A stretch of 64,000 bases of DNA from assembly GCA_964247055.1 (NCBI GenBank), contig OZ176052.1, positions 9,734,001 to 9,798,000 on the forward strand, given 5' to 3'. The first letter of the stretch is position 1; each line of letters opens with the position of its first letter. Below the pieces are notes generated by a model, which searched no databases, was not told the origin of the DNA, and was given only the letters and a program-made list of their open reading frames with translations. Source of the DNA: Paragordius varius. Lineage: Eukaryota > Animalia > Nematomorpha. Position numbers and translations under genes: made by a program. Positions 14,838 to 63,612 of the stretch are shown one piece after another.

Positions 14838-15568
14838 GCTGTCCGGATTTTAAGAAACGGTTTTTTTAAATAGTTATATTTTATAAATTATATTTATAGA
14901 GATTGGCAATGGTATAAAAAAAATTATTTCATCAATATATTACTATTATAGCAGTCAGAAGCAGTAAAAACAAATAAATTTAGCTGTTAATTGAAAAAAT
15001 TTAAACATGTTTTATATATTATATGTTAGGGGATGTCATGGGTATATTTTCCTTTTTTCAGAATGGTCAACCCCAAATTTGATTTTACAGAGTTTCAAAG
15101 GTGTTAAAAAATAATGGCCTTCAAATATATTTGTAAATTAAGTTATCTTTGTGTTAATTAAGGACTCAGAAGTAATTAAAATTATATTTTTTAATTCTAA
15201 TTATGTAAAACTTTATGAGCTATATCTATAAAAAATAGCAATCGATACGGGCCTAAATGGTTTATTTTCAATATATAATTATTAACTTTTCTGATCTTAG
15301 ATCTCATAATCAACATGCAAGGTAATAAATATTATTAGTAATTGAAAAATTATTTTATCTAAACTTATTCATTTTTTGAAAAAAAAGACGTGATTGATGA
15401 ATGGAATGGTAAATTTTATTATTTTATACATAAAATGTTCCGATAAAAGAGCAATTTATATTAATCCCTGTTTTTTGCCCGCTTTCCTGTAAAAATAGGT
15501 TTTTTTGAAAAGCACAAAAAGCGTGCTTCCATTATAATTATTTATACTTTTTTTCAGCGCCGATATAA
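3059..15568 (+). CDS. Orphan micro-exon gene (MEG-like), ~34 exons, ~476 aa, predicted signal peptide
   Basis: Exons read by hand: 3059-3122, 3149-3220, 3255-3293, 3332-3424, 3829-3900, 4330-4428, 4489-4530, 4569-4637, 4681-4707, 4746-4769, 4823-4885, 5179-5295, 5474-5518, 5616-5624, 5696-5704, 5765-5782, 5834-5842, 6157-6285, 7169-7204, 7238-7246, 7281-7304, 7354-7386, 7478-7516, 8106-8153, 8614-8664, 8737-8778, 14722-14742, 14839-14859, 14900-14911, 14952-14963, 15030-15041, 15062-15100, 15301-15321, 15558-15568. All GT-AG, all introns phase 1, open frame throughout. N-terminus MLCPIVYIAIISFLKVDS. The 14722-15568 block could be a separate gene. Confidence 0.65.
5873..6110. mobile_element. 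Degenerate hairpin MITE (same family as 6899-7080)
   Basis: Inverted arms cacgttatagttggtcaattggcaatacagtagtg / cactactgtattactaattggccaacaataatgtg; boundaries approximate. Confidence 0.55.
6475..6686. mobile_element. ~200-bp hAT-type MITE (CAGAGGCG-type ends)
   Basis: Right end tagcgacgcctctg; internal sequence similar to copies at 25047-25274 and 63613-63803. Confidence 0.65.
6899..7080. mobile_element. Tc1/mariner-type hairpin MITE
   Basis: Long imperfect TIRs cagtgtgcattttaat...cactatagttgggcgattcgcaacacag / ctgtgttgcaaattgcccaaatatagtg...attaaaatacatactg followed by TA. Confidence 0.6.
8881..9171. mobile_element. Tc1/mariner-type MITE nested in the left arm of the 8818-11708 element
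   Basis: TA|cagtaaaaattgaaatt...aatttcaatttttactg|TA; ~80-bp TIRs with TA duplication. Confidence 0.75.
9490..11214 (-). mobile_element. Decayed, one-end-truncated hAT-Blackjack-like transposon
   Basis: Minus-strand frameshifted transposase fragments (RTKAEAIV, DASNHK, AYCADNTN, AHIIHKAIQ, KTRWLALLPAI). Terminus reads TAGGGTGACCAGACGTCCC on the minus strand from 11214, matching the Blackjack/MER94-type TIR as recalled. Other TIR not seen. Confidence 0.8.
11866..13481. mobile_element. Non-autonomous hAT element with 8-bp TSD
   Basis: TIRs cagtggcggaacta / tagtttcgccactg; flanks atagtgtt (11858-11865) and atagtgtg (13482-13489), 7/8 identical. Confidence 0.85.
14799..14834. repeat. (TA)n microsatellite (others at ~5746, 19742, 37464, 40075, 51227, 52567)
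   Basis: Directly visible dinucleotide runs. Confidence 0.9.
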
Positions 15569-28545: not shown

Positions 28546-31270
28546 TTATTTGACTTGTTTGTAGAAAAGAGTGGTTACATATTTTTTCTTATGTCTGTGC
28601 GTACAACTTAGCACCATTACCCCATCCTAATATGTTAAATAAAATATTACAGTATGAGTAGGTATACATTGCTAAAAAGTTATTAATTATTGCCAAATAG
28701 CATATACAACAAAGGGAAATATTATTGGTTTATATTTATTTTTTCACTTTTTACCATTACAAGACAATAATAATTCTCTTTGTTGCAGATGCTATTTGGC
28801 AATAATTAAAATTTTCTAGCAATATATACTTACTCATACTGTATAATATATATTGCATATAATTAACTTCAAATTTAAACTTTTTTAGAAATGAATATTA
28901 AATGGAAAAATGATCTTTAAATATAAACAATGATTTGAATGGTATATAAATTATAATATGAAAAACAAAACAAAAGTAATTTTTTTATAAGGACAACCAT
29001 ATTTTTTAAACCTTGATTTTTTAATATAAAATCTATATGAATACAATTTTGAAATTATTATTATTTAGCATAACAGTTACATCTCATCATCCCTCGTTTA
29101 GCAACCCAATAATTAAATGTTTAAAATATATGGACTTTAAATAAAGATATAAGAATCTTTTGATTTTTATGTTTTTTTCTTATTTAAAAAAATTTGGTGT
29201 TTTATTCAATTAATCACAAAAATCGCATATAACATATAAGTAAAAAAAACTTTGATAGAAAGGGCATAGAGATGGTTAAGTATTGCACGTGACGAAGGCT
29301 CCGGTAACAATGCCGGTTCATAGTTGTAAGGGACATCGCGATTCAATAAAACCTGTAATTAAAAAAGAGTTAATTAAAAGCTTTACATTAAGTTTTAGGA
29401 AAACTAAGTTAGAATAAAACTCATAAATTATAAAACTATTTGCAAGATAAAATGAGAATTAAATTGGCAACTTTAATATAAAATGAATTTTTATTAATAA
29501 ACAAAAGTGTAAATCATAATTAGAAAATTATTTTTAAAATAGTACATTATTAGGAATTCAATTTACATTTTAATCTGTAATAAGACAAAAACATTTTTTT
29601 TAATATATTTTTTCAATCCCTTAAAATAAGGCCAAAACAAAAATTACAAATTTATTAATTTGATAAATCAACTTACCTGTAGTAACTGGGGTGGAAGACC
29701 AGGTGGGTCAGTTATTGCACTGTTTGTTGATTGTGATTTGCTTGTCTCACTTGATTTTGGAGGTTTCGGTGGTATTTTCTGCCCATAATCCCAAAGCGTA
29801 AAATAGTCGGGAGGGTGTCTATAAACGTATATGGTTTATTTTAAAAATGATTTACTAATAGTCCTAATGGTTTTTTGAATAAAGGGCGTAAACTTAATAA
29901 ACGGCTTATTCATTAAAAGTTTTGCATAATTTCCGGGCTAAATAATGTTTGACAGATTTTAGTTTATAAGTTGACTGAACCAGGGGAAAAACGCTTTTAA
30001 TTTCACACCGCCTTATAATCCCAAGTTTTACTTTGATCCAGATTACAATTATTCAATGTTAACTAAAAAATGGCTAAAATTATATGATAAAAAATTTATA
30101 TTTACTTTTCTTCCAACGATGCGGCTTTAGAATCTTGCTGATTTCCTAACATTTTTCCGGTTGTGGGAGAATCCAAATATGCTAAATTGTTATTAGCCTG
30201 TTTATCTGGAGGATAAATGAAGTAAGATATAAAAAATCCGAAATTGGGCCAAAAATATTAATTAAATCGGATTTGCGCGGGAAACAATATAATCCAATAA
30301 ATAAATGTGTAAAAAATTATTTTTGTGGTAGATTCCATTTTTTATATGATGTATGTGAAAACTTGCGCAATTAATAAATAATTAATATCTATTTAAAAAA
30401 GTTTACATATTAAATAAATTATTTATTGTGCAGGTTATATCCATTAAAATTGCATTAAAAAAAATAAATAAACCTTTACAAATTAAATAATTTAAAACCA
30501 TATTTGTGAAAAATCAAATCTGTTTTTTGTTAAATTTTTTTTATAAAATAAAACAATTACCTGATGATTTATCTTTTGTGTGCCGCAGAGAGGCAATATC
30601 AACAGCTAAAGCATCAAAAACTTCGAAATCGGTTTTATTTATTTCCAAAACATTGTTTTTGGTACCCAAATCATTATCCACGGTCGGCTATTAAAAAACC
30701 AGAATTTTTACAAAAATGAACGATTGATGGAAAAATTTTGGTGTTAGAATTTTGTGTAAATTTTAATTTTACCTGTTCGTCGTCATGAACCCATTTATTG
30801 TCAACAAAAAATTTGTATTGATGTGTCCCTTCTGGTATTTGTAAAATAGTAGTAAAATTGCCATGACTATTAATTAAAACAATTTATTTTATAAAACATA
30901 AATTTAAAATATAATATAGTAATATTTTAACCAACCAAAAACCTTGCAACTAAAGGAATTTTCGTCCTCCAATTATCCCAACTTCCCGAAACATATACAT
31001 TTTTTCCACCCTTGTTCCATCTAAAAACGGAATATATAGATTTATGTTCTTTGGGACCATTGTCTTCTCCGCTAAAAGTACGAGATCTTCGTCTATTTAG
31101 AGCACTCTCGCTTTTTTCATTTTGCTGATAATTAATCAAGATATTATTACCATGCGTTTTAGATTATTAGCAATTTTATCCCTTTCCGCAACAAGTTCAA
31201 TATGTCTCCCTGGTGAAGGAGACGAAGAATCTTCTCCGCTATAAAGGCGTCTCGAGTTTGTAGCACCCAT
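28546..31270 (-). CDS. PRKAB: AMP-activated protein kinase beta subunit
   Basis: Exons 31270-31151, 31124-30943, 30866-30773, 30687-30561, 30205-30106, 29818-29677, 29352-29251, 28626-28546. MG start (myristoylation site), glycogen-binding module (FRWNKGGKNVYVSGSWDNW...HQYKFFVDNKW), C-terminal domain PPGLPPQLLQ|VLLNRD...LNHLYALSIK|DGVMVLSCTHRHKKKYVTTLFYK. Confidence 0.95.
28650..28841. mobile_element. Tc1/mariner-type MITE in the last AMPK beta intron
   Basis: TA|cagtatgagta...tactcatactg|TA with ~60-bp TIRs; half copy at ~5060-5112. Confidence 0.75.
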
Positions 31271-31459
31271 TACTTCAATTAAAAATCATATGCCAAACGT
31301 ATGTTAAAAATCTAGGGACTGAGGCCAATCATGAACATATCCAACAAATGATAAAAAAAGTAAAATTTTTATGGTATATCACACAGTAAAAAATTATTTT
31401 TAACCCTTTTGTCTATTGTAGTTTCCAATCAAAAAGTAGTTAATAAAGACTTGAATACT

Positions 31460-33936: not shown

Positions 33937-35566
33937 TTATTGTTGATATAATTTAGCGTATGGATTATCTTCTATCAAATTTTCGCAGGATGTTTCCAAC
34001 TTGTTTGATGTTTTATCATCCTTAGGTTCTGCCATATTTTCTCGCCTTTCGTTAACATTCGGCAATGTATTGGCGTCAAAAGTTTCATTTTCAAAATCAA
34101 ACTTTAATTTAAAAGTGTCGCTTATTTCATCTTCAAAAATGCCAAATGAAGAATTTCCAAGCAGGGCAGGTATGTAGGCAGGAATATTGCCTATATTTTC
34201 CACACTATTAGGTATTACTGTATGTTAAAAACAAAGAAATTTACGAAAAGTATCCCCGTTTCCTAGCAAATCAAATGCATTTGGAAATGACTTGGCAAGG
34301 AATTGGGTATACGATTGTTCTAAATCGAATTTTTTTGCTAACGCCTTTTCCCTGTGTATTTCACGTTGATCTTCCGACAATGTATCATTGTCGATCTAGA
34401 AAAAAGGGAGAGATAAGATTAGAAATTACCAGTGTTTTAACGTATGTTCGCTTATCTGGTAGTTCTGGAAAATATTCTGGTATATAGGGAAATATATCTT
34501 TAGTACCACTTTTTAATGTTTTGGCTTCATTTGGCTTAGCTTGTGTCTGTACTAAATAGGTAAATTAAAAATAATCCATTTTAGAATATTTTTAGGAATA
34601 TCGTAAGAGATTATTAATCAATATATGTCGATTATGAAATAAAATATAAGAATTTATAAAAATAGGATCAAAAAACATTCGATGCTAAATAAAACTATAA
34701 CACATAGTAGGTTCAATAAAAGAAATATTATTTGACATTATTCAATTTTTTTTTTAAATTTTATTCATTCATGGCTTTACAAATAATACTTACTGAAATT
34801 TGAAAGCTTTTCATGTTTGAAGGTTGCCACTAAATATTAGACCTCGACATTACCAAAAGTCTGAATCTATGGAATAAGATGCTTAGTGGCAACCTTTACC
34901 AATAATTAAACTATTTTAAACACGTAAACATTTATTAATATTCAAAGCTTTTGTTGTTGATCGGTGTTAAGAACATGCGCCAATAAAAAAGAAAGAAAAA
35001 AATCAAAAATAACTTCCTCATAATTAGACAATAAGAATGGGCAGTATATTATTGGCAAAGTGCACAAAAAGTGTTATATAACAAGTATTATTGGAAGATT
35101 GAATATGCATTCAAGAACGTAAATGTAAAAAAGGTTTTATTAAATACGACATAAGGTTAAAGTTTTTATATATATTTTATCCATCATATAAACAAATTCT
35201 AAGAAATGGCGTCAAAAATAAAAAGGCATTCAAACAAATTAACTCACAATTTGGTATTTGAATGGTAGGTTGTTGCAGCAAAGACATATTGACCAGACTA
35301 TTTATATCGATACCTAGGATAAAATAAAAATGAATACCCATTTCTACCAAAGCCAAAACAATATCGGACACAAGTGGTTGAGTACGTCCAGCGTGTTCAG
35401 CAAAACGCTTTGATAAGAATCCCAAATCAACAATAAGTGTTTGCAACATTTCTTGACAAATATTAATTAAATTAGAATCAGCTTTGGTAATTTTATTTGC
35501 TAACAAAATATTATTGAGAGCTACACCGAGAACTTTACCATATGAATTATCATTTTCAACGTCCAT
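33937..35566 (-). CDS. TAF8: TFIID subunit 8
   Basis: Exons 35566-35338, 35313-35248, 34551-34430, 34395-34245, 34217-33937. Histone fold ending AEHAGRTQPLVSDIVLALVEMG, then PYIPEYFPELPDKRTYVKT, REKALAKKFDLEQSYTQFLAK and PAYIPALL, matching TAF8 motifs as recalled. Confidence 0.9.
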
Positions 35567-35580
35567 GATTTTACGTATGT

Positions 35581-37249
35581 ATGGAAATACGCCCATATAA
35601 ATCAAAACAACCTAAAATTGTCTCCGATTTATATAATTCTGATTATTCGTTTCGGCAAATTACACATATCGATTGGGATAAATCAGAAAACATACTTACT
35701 TCATGTTTAAATGGAGACATCAGAATACAAAGTCCAACAAATATTTTGTGGGAGAAAAAGATGGAAAAAGGTGTTAAAAAGCCTTTATGGCTAAACCAAA
35801 CAAACATTGTTTCAATAAATTATGGGAACGGTGTGAGCATAGTGGATGTGAGCAAAAGTATTCCTTAATTTTATTAGATATCATGATGGCTAGTTATACA
35901 CCAAGAGATTATGTGACCAGTCTTGTTCTCTATGAATTTAATTATGCAATTTGTGGGTCCAAAAATTATTTGATTTTGATTGATTTACGAACCAATTTAA
36001 ATCCGATAAAAGAATATAGAAAACATGTATTCGGGCAAGTTAATTTATAATCCAAAATAGTCATTAGATACTATTCTTTTACCAAATGAAGCGTTTGTGA
36101 ATTCTGGCGATAATGTATCAAAAAATACCGAGGAAGCAAATTTATTGGTGTGGGATATTCGTACTGGATGCGTGCTGTCCAATCAAATTTACCGTGTAAA
36201 TGGGACTAAATATTGCTAAATCGTTTAAAAATATTAATTCAAATTAAAGGAAATATTATATAAAAGAAAATAAAAATTTATGTTTTATTATCGACTTTAT
36301 ATCTTTTGTTATATTTTATTTAATTCTAAAAAGAGAAAAAATAATGCAACAAAATCATTTTATGGTCATATATTTCGTTTTTTATTAGGAAAAATACACT
36401 TGTCCAAAATTATTGTTGGAACGAAAACAAAATCCATCTCGTTTTTTCGCTCAAACGAATGGGAATTACATTGCATCGTTTTCCACTATGCCTCCATACA
36501 AAATGTATAAGCATTTGTTTCAGGGTGGTCATCTGGTATTATTATTATTATTATTGTTTTAGCGATAATTTTAGCATTTGCTTTTTAATATGGTTGATGA
36601 TTGGTTAATTAATTTTTTTAAGAAATAACATATTCATAATAAATATAATTTATTGAAGAGTGTAAAATTTATTTTTTATGATTTTACATATAACAGAGTT
36701 AACCTACTTAATTACATTTTAAAGTAATATCTGTATTATGCGCAACTCTCGTAGCTTTTTAACTTTAAATAAATATGGGTAAAACTTTATTTTTTTGTTA
36801 CATTAAACACATAACCCCATTTTTTTTATATGCCTCTATCACACAAATATTTACTATTTTAATCCTGTAAATTTGTCTTTCACTATTTTCAAATTTCATT
36901 TTGGCAGGATATGTCAAATAAATAAATATAATATGTCAAAAATTAGGTAATGGGATATTCGATTGGTATGGATCAAACATATGGCGGTAAATACATTTTT
37001 AGTGGTAGCAGTGAGGGAAAATTGTATAAATACAATGCTTACAATGGAAATGTTGCTAAAATTATATTCCCAACAAATTGGGCATTGAAAGGTCCACAAA
37101 ATGGGAACATGGAAAATAATGTTTTATATAATGAAACAGACCTAGCAATTACGGCTTTAGCCATAAATCCATACCATTGTAGCGATAATGGTTCCTCACA
37201 TATTGCTATTGGAACATTAAATGGCCAAATATTTTATGTTACCTTGTAG
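35581..37249 (+). CDS. WDR25: WD-repeat protein 25
   Basis: Exons 35581-35857, 35878-36038, 36061-36195, 36389-36535, 36947-37249. LLVWDIRTGCVLSNQIYR|EKYTCPKL...FFAQTNGNYIASFSTMPPYKM...GHL|VMGYSIG matches the WDR25 C-terminal WD repeats (AQTNGNY, GYSVG) as recalled. Confidence 0.88.
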
Positions 37250-47440: not shown

Positions 47441-48927
47441 CAGGGCTTTTTAAACTATTGTTTGCAACCCCATTTGGGGTCGCGTAGCAAAATTATGGGG
47501 TCGCGAGTGATAAAATTACAATTTAACAAAAAATGTTTTTAGTTTACAATTATTGTTCTAAAGAAAAATAACAATCATCGTAGATAAATTTATCATAAAA
47601 TTTTCTGGTTCGGAAAGACTGTTTATACCAGCATTTCTTTTCCGATCATTATAATCTGTATATTTATAAAAATGGAAAATGCTGGCTTTGTGATTTTCCC
47701 TTGTTTTTTCCCATCATAGCTGGGGCACCATCTGTTGTCAAACAAGATAGCGCCCTCATATTTAATTTACTGACAATACATTTTAAAAGTGCATGAAACA
47801 TATCATCTCCCTTAGTTGTATTTTTCGTCGGAAGTAAGTCTAACATGTCTTCTGTTATATTAAAAAATTCATCTATCCCTGAATAAAGACTATTAATTGT
47901 GATATGTTGCTTATATCTGTGCTTTCATCAAATGACAAGGAAAACGCCACAAAATTTTGAATTCCTTTTTTAGGGAAAGTTGAATTTCTTCTGCTATGTC
48001 TGTAATTCGTCGACACATAGTATTGCGCGAAAGACTTATACTGGATATTAATTCAATTTTATTAGGCAAAACACATTTTATAATTTCCAGTACGCATTCC
48101 TTTAAAAACTCATCACCAGAATAAGGCTTCATTTTTTTGGCGAGTAAATTGGCCACAATATAACTTGCCTTTACTATCGGATAAGGTTGCGTGAATAAAA
48201 TTGTTGGTTGGAGATTATTTATATTTTTTAAAGATTCTAATTTTATTATTTTCATTTCTGTAGTCATATTAATGAAATCCAAATGCATCATGGTATTGGC
48301 ATGTCCTTTTAAATTATATTCGTGAAACCCGTTTGTCGTAAATTTGCAAATAAGGCACTCCGCTTTGTTGAAAATTTGAGTAAACTCATATTTTAATTCC
48401 CAGTCGGGATTGTATTTTCTAGTTACTTTTTTAGATTTATGCATATTGAAAGCTAAATAAATTATTTTAAATACCTATTTTTTTGCAAGTAATTTACTGT
48501 TTCAATGGACCCAAATTATAATTCCCAGTATTGGTATGAAAGCTAAATAAATTATTTTAACCTATTTTTTTGCAATTTAATGTTTCAATGGACCCAATTT
48601 ATAATTCCCAGTATTGGTGTGAAAGCTAAATAAATTATTTTAAATACCTATTTTTTGCAAGTAATTTAATGTTTTATTTAATATGAAAGTTATCATCATG
48701 AAGTTGGAATATAAATGATTAAATGAATGCGATGATAGATATTTATAATAAAGAATTTTATTAAAAGTTTCTAAAAATAATTTAAATGTCAAAATAAAAA
48801 TGCATAATTTACGTATAAAAATTTTTTAAAAAAAATTAGAAATTATTTTTTTTCAAAATTTTCAAAGAGCCACTCAAATTTTCAATGAGCCACTAGTGGC
48901 TCGCGAGTACGGTGTTGGACACCCCTG
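47441..48927 (-). mobile_element. Internally deleted hAT-Charlie/Buster (SPIN-like) transposon
   Basis: ORF fragments 48444-47911 (CLIC..YNLK.H; KASYIVANLLAKKMKPYS; ISLSRNTMCRRI) and 47846-47700 (TTKGDDMF; TTDGAPAMMG). Ends cagggc / ccctg, flanks atctagag / atatagac (6/8). About 2.5 copies of an ~88-bp tandem repeat at 48447-48670. Confidence 0.85.
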
Positions 48928-61100: not shown

Positions 61101-62983
61101 AGGAAAATTTTAATTACATATTATATATATAGGTGAATTCGATTATATATTAGCGTTATTTTTTACACATATTTTACTTTAGGTATGCCACATTATTCAG
61201 GATGGCTACGGACCAAACATTTTACATAGAAGCCATTATTAAGCTGTTAAAACTTATGAATTGGAATTATTTTTCACTCATGTACTATGAGAACGATTAT
61301 TTTACTTTGTACCGTTCACTACTCCTCAACAAACTAGATGAAATTAATGCCTGCATTCTCAGAGACATAAAAATTACGGCCAACACATCATCGGACCAGG
61401 ATACATTTGATCAATATTATCGTGAAGAATTTACACATTTAATCCACGATTCCAAGAGGATTCGTTTGGTGCTTTTGTTTTTGCCTAAATTGCGATACAT
61501 CTACGTTTTACGATTAATCAAAAATATAACGTTGACACCCAACCTTATATTTTTGGCCCTTGATAATTGGCCCGATTTAGATGAGCTAATAAACGAAGAG
61601 GTGATTGAAGTGGCCACCGGGACCATAACGGTCTTTGAATTTAATCGTCGGGTCGATGATTTTGCAGAATGGATGGAGGAAGTAAAAGAGAAAAACCGAG
61701 CTATGTTAGGACCTCCGTATAACGATTCAATTATTTTTAACCCAATACCCACAGTAAGTTATGATAAACGCTTTTCTATCATACTCGACATGGTAAGTAC
61801 GTTAGGGTTGGCTCTCCAATCATTGATAAAAAATGAATGTAACTTGGATAAAACCGTGAGTAATATTTCAAAGGCTAATGCACTATATAATTGTTTGAAT
61901 CATAGTAATATAATGCTTTACCTGCAAAACACTAGTTTTAATGGGAGAACAGGCGAAATCAAATTTAACAGTCATCGTTCAATAACTAAAGTTTTGCAGA
62001 TAGGTCAGTTAACTCAAAGACCACCTGAGCCCAGTCGTCCGTCTTATTTGGAACGATCATTTATGGATAGAACTAATATTAGTACAACGTTTCCAAAATT
62101 TTCGTATCAGATTGTAGGTACGTACAATCCATTCAAACAACAACTCAACATATTTCAACCGTTTGTTTGGCTCAACTACACTTTTGACAATGGCGATGAT
62201 GCCCCCCTGTCAAGCTGTAGTCTCCCCTGTGAAGAAAATGAAATTAAAATAACCATAAATCTTACATGTTGTTGGGTGTGTTTAAAGTGTCAAGCAAATG
62301 AATTCTTCTCCATTAAATTACAACGATGTGAAATGTGTCCACACTTTACACGACCTGACCCGGCAAGCCTCTATAGTTGTTTAGCTCTCCCTTAAAAAAT
62401 TATAAGTCAAGATTTTAAATTGTGGCGTAATTTATTATCAGTTATGATGGGCATTTCTCTTCTGTACTTTGTACTTTACATTACGTTTTTCACTACCAAT
62501 TTTAGGACGCTTACGTTTCGGAATGAGTTTAAAGCCTTAGTTTATTTCCAAAGTCTGGGTATATGCATGGGTATAATTGCGACATTTCTATATATCATAG
62601 TACCTCCTAACTATCGAATTTGTGTCGCGGCCCAATTTTTATTACAACTTGCGCTAAGTATGAATTACGCCGCATTAGCGGCCAAATTATACATTATTTC
62701 ACAGGTTATGCGTAAACGAAGCACTGAATACAATTCGGTCGCCCCATCTCACATTTACACAAGCGTCACAAATGCCAACCACCCTAAGTCAAATGCTGGT
62801 AAACAAACAATTAATGATTCTAATCATCTAAACAATGTTATTAACACAACCATGATTTCAGACCTAAAGATATCAGCAACACCAAAAGATATTACACAAA
62901 ATAGTTCTAATAAAAAACAACAAATTAAATTTGTTCATCTCAGAGCTTTTATATGGATGCCAATGCTTATGACCATTTTACAA
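58171..62983 (+). CDS. Metabotropic glutamate receptor-like class C GPCR (3' end beyond window; in-frame TAA at 62393-62395)
   Basis: Exons 58171-58707, 58814-~58842, 59202-59280, 59703-59872, 61183-62983. Signal peptide; VFT motifs PGDIYVGALF, VLGPFSS, IPQIS, LFRMATD, FNGRTGEIKF; Cys-rich domain CSLPC...TCCWVCLKC...CEMC; hydrophobic TM1-TM4 follow in the same frame after the stop. Confidence 0.85.
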
Positions 62984-63612
62984 GTATTATTAACTTAAAA
63001 ACTTACATTCAAAATTTGATCATTCGACCTTTTATTACTGTTTTGTAAACTAAACTGTTTTCAAAAGCTTTTCTAATTAAACCAATGGTATACTAGGGAT
63101 ATACAAATTTTTTAAGAGTCGCCTTAGAATCTAATTATGATGGCCAAAAAACTCAATCAAATCTTTAATGATCGTCCCATATATGGTAGTTAGATTCATA
63201 AAAAATAAATGTTTGTTATATTTTTTAAACTTTTTATATAATTCAAAACACATAAACAGAGAAAAATGCTCTACCTACTGAGTTAGCTGAAATATTTGTT
63301 GAGGACTAGGATAAAATATGCGCAATTTAATGGTTAGCTTCTGTAGCATATACCGGTAAAATATCGGACCATTCCCACTATAAGCTTAATAAAATTAAAT
63401 TGGTGCCTTGGCAAGACTTGTAAAAAGTTCGCAATGGCCAAATGCGACCCCTTTTTTGTATACGTAGTATAGTGAATTTTGTAAAACATCAATAGATTGT
63501 GCTAAATAATTTTGATAAATATCTTAAGGATAAAAATTATCGTTTATCAACGTTGCTGTTAATGAGTTTAATTGGTCATAAATACATTATTTGATCGTAG
63601 CTTCCTTATGAC

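Follow-up and report, generated by a model that had tools for sequence, protein, structure and literature searches.

The window (the whole stretch of 64,000 nucleotides analysed here) has a G+C content of ~26%, and the assembly to which it belongs comprises 110.6 Mb in 44 contigs. A gene of five exons was located on its forward strand, and sequence comparison supports its identity as an orthologue of WDR25. The exons and the putative introns between them are listed below, with their coordinates on a WDR25 profile.

35581..35857, forward strand: exon 1, open frame from the putative start ATG at 35581; position 35857 is base 1 of the split codon AAT; in-frame piece 35581-35856, 92 aa
35858-35877, forward strand: putative micro-intron 1, 20 nt, phase 1, GTATTC...TTAG, gtattccttaattttattag
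35878..36038, forward strand: exon 2, in-frame part 35880-36038, 53 aa; hmmsearch E 1.3e-3, profile 293-340
36039-36060, forward strand: putative micro-intron 2, 22 nt, phase 0, GTTAAT...ATAG, gttaatttataatccaaaatag
36061..36195, forward strand: exon 3, 45 aa; hmmsearch E 4.8e-12, profile 348-388, match stops exactly at the exon end
36196..36388, forward strand: intron 3, 193 nt, phase 0, GTAAAT...TTAG; profile 388/389, offset-0 score +354
36389..36535, forward strand: exon 4, 49 aa; hmmsearch E 1.6e-16, profile 389-434
36536..36946, forward strand: intron 4, 411 nt, phase 0, GTATTA...TTAG; profile 435/436
36947..37246, forward strand: exon 5 including the stop (in-frame 36947-37243), 99 aa; hmmsearch E 2.6e-10, profile 436-474

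Both short segments were AT-rich, beginning with GT and ending with AG. The preliminary description had given their coordinates and lengths correctly to the base, and it had stated that read-through of either one meets a stop; retention indeed resulted in TAA at 35866-35868 in the 20-nt segment and TAA at 36048-36050 in the 22-nt segment. Removal of 35858-35877 joined ...GVSIVDVSK, through an N encoded by the split codon A/AT, to IMMASYTPRDYVTSL, and removal of 36039-36060 joined ...KHVFGQ to SLDTILL. With both segments taken as U2-type introns the frame was restored and the product was collinear with the homologous proteins, whereas retention gave neither.

The WDR25 profile was built from 26 orthologous proteins, and the window exons were searched against it one by one. 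Exons 2 to 5 matched in the correct order, with neighbouring matches abutting within one residue. The match of exon 2 was weak when taken alone, and exon 1 alone showed no significant match to the profile. The Pfam scan of single WDR25 exons detected no family and no WD40 model, the WD matches of exons 1 and 5 in a sequence search of the PDB were all at chance level, and a word search with exon 1 returned zero candidates. A search of 1.8 billion proteins with exon 5 gave four matches, including a millipede WDR25 (P0004, 448 aa, so named at NCBI) with E 2.7e-4, the only one of the four with a C-terminal placement and a similar protein size. P0004 as a query retrieved >100 proteins named WDR25 by their sources. 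Neither the gene itself nor a transcript-derived protein was found by the word search with exon 1 or the 1.8-billion-protein search with exon 5.

The window gene was very divergent from the WDR25 of other animals and appears to do without their long, poorly conserved N-terminal extension. It has in common with them the WD-repeat domain and four intron positions and phases. Similarity across the WD domain and shared gene structure were both found and argue for WDR25, as judged by comparison with proteins named WDR25; CDC40/PRP17 is a related WD-repeat protein. The name WDR25, which the preliminary description had already proposed, is supported by the exon-by-exon profile matches together with the coincidence of intron positions and phases with five orthologues.

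Intron positions in five WDR25 orthologues

The preliminary description had aligned the residues around site 1 without gaps to a human sequence. We set this alignment aside and used five annotated non-human orthologues in its place (millipede, scorpion, snail, sea urchin, and coral), which gave the same register. Their genomic loci were treated by exact spliced alignment, and each intron was mapped onto the WDR25 profile, with the following result.

Profile 287/288, phase 1: millipede 65 nt, scorpion 2168 nt, snail 275 nt, urchin 602 nt, coral 395 nt; window 20 nt
Profile 342/343, phase 0: millipede 68 nt, scorpion 70 nt, snail 145 nt (three of the five, the protostomes); window 22 nt
Profile 388/389, phase 0: intron in all five orthologues; window 193 nt
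Profile 435/436, phase 0: scorpion, snail, urchin, and coral (four of the five); window 411 nt

Introns 1 and 2 thus measured 20 and 22 nt in the window gene, compared with 65-2168 nt in the orthologues. At 287/288 the split codon N of the window gene aligned with the residue whose codon is split in every orthologue, an A in snail and a G in the other four. At 342/343 the orthologue exons ended in ...FGQ or ...IGQ, and the window exons read ...VFGQ/SLD across the junction. Ungapped scans against the orthologue exon boundaries gave the same picture. The last 25 residues of exon 1 aligned with the orthologue exon end at offset 0 only, where the BLOSUM sum was +40, compared with ≤ −25 at 24 other offsets. 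The start of exon 2 scored +33 at offset 0 (others ≤ −40) and its end +12 (others ≤ −16). The scan of the exon 3 start showed its maximum at +1, resulting from a one-residue deletion.

The chance of finding both GT and AG at such positions is ~0.05 × 0.05 per site, a rough value from base composition. GT and AG at an ancestral position and phase at two independent sites is, on the sequence evidence, more than chance. All four window introns lie at conserved positions and phases, which indicates that they are ancestral introns, two of them reduced to 20 and 22 nt. We regard the match of position and phase with the orthologues as the decisive evidence for both predicted micro-introns. The proposal of two spliceosomal introns in WDR25, made in the preliminary description, agrees with this result, as the position and phase predicted for each equal those of an orthologue intron.

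Micro-introns in other genes and splicing signals

Two further GT-AG segments, of 24 nt (gtttttattattttaaatttttag) and 25 nt (gttttgttgatgtataatctttcag), must be removed from RPL23 (L027, G000:C6:9244956-9245133, reverse strand). The 24-nt segment is in frame and stop-free, so an ORF finder reads through it, and its retention would add the eight residues FYYFKFLG to the invariant motif CADNTG^AKNLY (^ marks the insertion point). For the 25-nt segment the Pfam coordinates abut at 54/55, and a 157-nt intron follows. The RPL23 of Gordionus (P0124) reads NTGAKNLY and RKKVMPAVV, uninterrupted across both micro-intron sites. The nearest named protein was from Gordionus sp., with few residue differences and an identity of 86% in which the eight intron-coded query residues are counted; the Gordionus RPL23 protein cluster had no member from the window's species. 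Continuity of a Pfam match across a short segment was also found in three other genes.

GFER: micro-intron of 21 nt, PF04777 continuous from 1-48 to 51-93
SLBP, L018:4885-5240, reverse strand: micro-intron of 23 nt, PF15247 continuous from 4-29 to 33-70
LSM1, L018:5573-5835, forward strand: in-frame micro-intron of 27 nt, PF01423 continuous from 11-31 to 33-65

Further candidates of 23-24 nt were seen in SLBP and of 26 nt and 25 nt in LSM1, where profile continuity was found for the 27-nt one only. Together nine micro-introns of 20-27 nt were collected (window, L018, L021, and L027), and eight of them were backed by profile or orthologue continuity. The 20-nt case of WDR25 is the shortest validated one and the lower edge of the class.

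The length spectrum of ORF-bridging segments was calculated over 264 kb at two stringencies, and GT..AG was compared with control dinucleotides. In the unfiltered spectrum GT..AG was not in excess of the controls, because the signal was swamped by degenerate transposon ORFs and chance-open frames. After AT filtering, 45 GT..AG segments of 22-29 nt were counted compared with 17-28 for seven control dinucleotide pairs, a modest excess. At 18-21 nt the AT-filtered spectrum showed no GT..AG excess, which puts 20 nt no higher than the bulk of the class. The ORF-bridging statistic is weakly informative on the class. Codon-usage log-odds were also tried as a coding filter and, at 1-12 bits per exon, were too weak. 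False positives of ORF bridging were recognized by eye in PP1 (L012 3298-3319), where the true intron is ~70 nt, in aldolase (L008), and in an SH3 gene (L020 1272-1289). At 47600-48450 on the reverse strand of the window lies a frameshifted remnant, by eye of a hAT-type transposase, in which chance GT..AG bridges mimic micro-introns.

Several other genes contained short GT-AG candidates. At 33940-35566 on its reverse strand the window has a TAF8-like gene with the Pfam domains Bromo_TP and TAF8_C, head-to-head with WDR25, whose ATG is 14 nt from the TAF8-like start codon. The candidates of this gene lie at 35314-35337 (24 nt, in frame and without a stop), 34396-34429 (34 nt), and 34218-34244 (27 nt). 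In the AMPK beta-subunit gene of the window (30544-31285, reverse strand), where AMPK1_CBM extends over two pieces, putative candidates of 26 nt (31125-31150) and 34 nt (30688-30721) were observed. The class C GPCR ORFs at 61202-62395 and 62420-62998 (forward strand) are linked by an in-frame GT..AG bridge of 36 or 33 nt at 62376-62411, and their in-frame TAA probably sits in a small intron. Outside the window, a 30-nt GT-AG candidate was seen at L020:8091-8120 (forward strand) in a gene that by eye resembles 4-hydroxyphenylpyruvate dioxygenase; Pfam gave no match for the two short flanking pieces. The 20-nt GT..AG candidate at 15042-15061 (forward strand, gtatattttccttttttcag) lies inside a putative micro-exon gene of the window. 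It showed good GT and polypyrimidine-AG signals amid tiny ORFs, and its region had neither a homologue nor a second copy or paralogue in the genome.

The donors GTATTC and GTTAAT of the two WDR25 segments pair poorly with canonical U1. Five of the nine micro-intron donors began with GTT and four with GTA, without further consensus. The +3 base of GTT is unusual among animal donors, and the three long introns in the same genes begin with GTA. With a donor that is barely more than GTW, recognition would probably depend on the closeness of both intron ends and less on strong U1 pairing. In the 20-nt segment CCTTAAT fits YNYURAY with a candidate branch A at +11, and most of the nine micro-introns, a small sample, showed by eye a TAAT-like motif 7-10 nt before AG. 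The best U2 snRNA copy retained the branch-binding GUAGUA, and the best U1 copy read ACUUACCUG; canonical U1 and U2 snRNAs indicate that a conventional splicing machinery is present. For U2 snRNA the genome gave 46 matches, of which many were divergent and clustered, at C3:257000-528000, at C2:11.95-11.99 Mb, and at chromosome ends, and 14 U1 snRNA matches clustered at C6:580-633 kb.

These signals are consistent with both segments being cut out of the mRNA through intron definition by the ordinary spliceosome. The branch adenosine would lie 7-10 nt upstream of AG, for example in CCTTAAT of the 20-nt intron, where ~10 nt would separate the branch from the 5′ splice site.

Weighing of the explanations

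Both segments are very probably genuine U2-type (GT-AG) spliceosomal introns of the WDR25 orthologue, a reading that draws on sequence comparison. They would be homologous to ancestral animal introns, now reduced in length to 20 and 22 nt, and would belong to a class of ~20-30 nt micro-introns that stands beside ordinary introns of 150-400+ nt in the same genes. The preliminary description had itself raised two other readings, the use of an upstream donor at 35831 and assembly indels. With donor 35831 site 1 would contain a 47-nt intron of the same phase, and with donor 36027 site 2 would contain a 34-nt one; in that case both introns would be small, but neither would be extreme. Both alternatives keep the frame, and 47 nt is closer to the ordinary minimal intron sizes of animals. 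We consider the upstream donors quite unlikely, however, because the 47-nt version loses the nine residues GVSIVDVSK, a WD-repeat strand with a conserved D, and its exon end scored −113 at offset 0 compared with +40 for the 20-nt model. That exon end aligned best 9-10 residues ahead of the orthologue exon end and intron position, and this displacement, like the loss of nine residues, argues against the use of donor 35831. The 34-nt version loses VFGQ, whereas the scorpion and snail exons end in ...FGQ and ...IGQ right at the intron. Introns of 21-27 nt were, moreover, independently validated in the same genome.

That the segments are not introns at all, and reflect a pseudogene or assembly indels or small insertions with coincidental GT..AG ends, seems extremely unlikely. 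One base missing from the A-run 35854-35857 would link frame 1 to frame 0, which is open from 35778, and a 1-nt assembly deletion is formally possible at site 1; degenerate transposon ORFs in the window also yield many chance GT..AG bridges. Such an indel would, however, add ~7 residues that the orthologues lack, and the GT..AG found right at the position of a conserved intron would be a coincidence. Site 2 is no simple indel because stops occur in both frames inside the 22 nt: frame 0 has the stop at 36048-50, and frame 1 is open only past TAG 36058-60. In both segments the GT start and the AG end coincide exactly with an intron of conserved position and phase, and indispensable genes, RPL23 and LSM1 among them, show the same pattern. 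Against a pseudogene, the five exons are all open and the WDR25 motifs are kept. Translational bypass and DNA excision of the ciliate IES type were rejected, as the GT..AG ends and the ancestral spliceosomal intron positions stand against both. A further reading accepts the introns as real and supposes inefficient or conditional splicing, so that much of the mRNA would stay unspliced and yield no product, with the micro-introns serving as a brake on expression. The donors are weak compared with canonical U1, and a passage in Hadjez et al. 2026 (PMC13644364) cites ~25% as the median efficiency with which very short introns are spliced in microsporidia; micro-introns also occur, however, in RPL23 and LSM1, highly expressed housekeeping genes that could ill afford poor splicing. 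Inefficient splicing appears very unlikely; it is compatible with genuine spliceosomal introns and does not replace that explanation.

It is slightly more likely than not that this hairworm-like ecdysozoan adds a third, independent lineage to the animals with sub-30-nt introns. It would be the first case of a discrete class of ~20-30 nt, often with GTT, that shares genes with long introns in a non-compact genome. One spliceosome would then serve two very different intron geometries. A 20-nt intron with ~10 nt from donor to branch bears on the minimal geometry acceptable to an animal spliceosome, and micro-introns in genes that also bear normal introns provide an internal control. By default STAR treats gaps <21 nt as deletions, and gene finders of the AUGUSTUS type have a minimum intron of ~40 nt. 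With such length limits these introns are taken for frameshifts or lost genes, and standard gene finders and read mappers (minimum intron ~20-40 nt) would break many genes. Broken models could in turn swell the number of ‘missing universal genes’ in Nematomorpha, and estimates of gene content and BUSCO completeness in this group could be distorted. The genome of Gordionus montsenyensis has a reported BUSCO completeness of 71.6% and a reported G+C content of 26.93%, which the window genome matches. The window DNA probably derives from a gordiid hairworm or a relative. The word ‘intron’ does not occur in the Gordionus genome paper, and our literature searches on nematomorph introns found no report.

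Comparison with known short introns

Animals were thought to be without introns <30 nt until Hadjez et al. 2026 (PMC13644364) surveyed 51 animal genomes and found introns <30 bp only in Myxobolidae and Dicyema japonicum. In that study the myxobolid medians were 22-27 bp with reduced splice-site motifs, introns of every length from 20 to 27 bp were aligned in myxobolids and Dicyema, and further animal lineages with introns <30 nt were predicted, with no nematomorph mentioned. The preliminary description had called the WDR25 introns near the smallest known in animals, which agrees with PMC13644364; 20 nt is at the low end and is not a record.

The myxobolids (Henneguya salminicola, Thelohanellus kitauei, and Myxobolus spp.; PMC13644364) resemble the present case in their GT-AG introns of ~20-27 nt, which lie at conserved positions and are flanked by conserved exons. 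Their 5′ splice-site signal is reduced to about GTa with a canonical U2 snRNA retained, as in the window genome, and A residues a few bases before AG were proposed as the branch, comparable to the candidate branch A here. The combination of <30 nt with reduced splice motifs (GTa ... AG), a trait of Myxobolidae and Dicyema introns, was also found in the nine micro-introns. The myxobolid introns were validated by positional conservation in housekeeping genes, the same argument as ours. The whole intron distribution of myxobolids is shifted, however, and their genomes are compact and reduced. A shift of this kind is not seen in the window genome, as judged by introns of 157, 193, and 411 nt in the same genes as the micro-introns. 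The window genome, at 110 Mb, has long AT-rich spacers, transposon remnants, and micro-introns beside introns of 150-400+ nt. The lineage also differs, ecdysozoan here and cnidarian in the myxobolids, and five of the nine micro-introns here begin with GTT.

Dicyema japonicum (Lu et al. 2019, PMC6736024), a parasitic bilaterian, likewise shows sub-30-nt GT-AG introns with weak splice motifs, and its genome is repeat-rich (49% repeats) despite the short introns (PMC6736024). The introns of Dicyema are uniformly short (mean 38 bp) and its gene set is strongly reduced, whereas the window gene mixes introns of 20-22 nt with introns of 193-411 nt. Among ciliates and in the Bigelowiella nucleomorph, AT-rich introns of 15-25 nt with GT..AG ends are removable by a canonical spliceosome, similarly to the proposal made here. 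Typical sizes are ~20-30 nt in Paramecium, 15-16 nt in Stentor, and 18-21 nt in the Bigelowiella nucleomorph (partly after PMC13644364). These are non-animals in which nearly all introns fall into one size class, unlike the mixture of short and long introns in the window gene.
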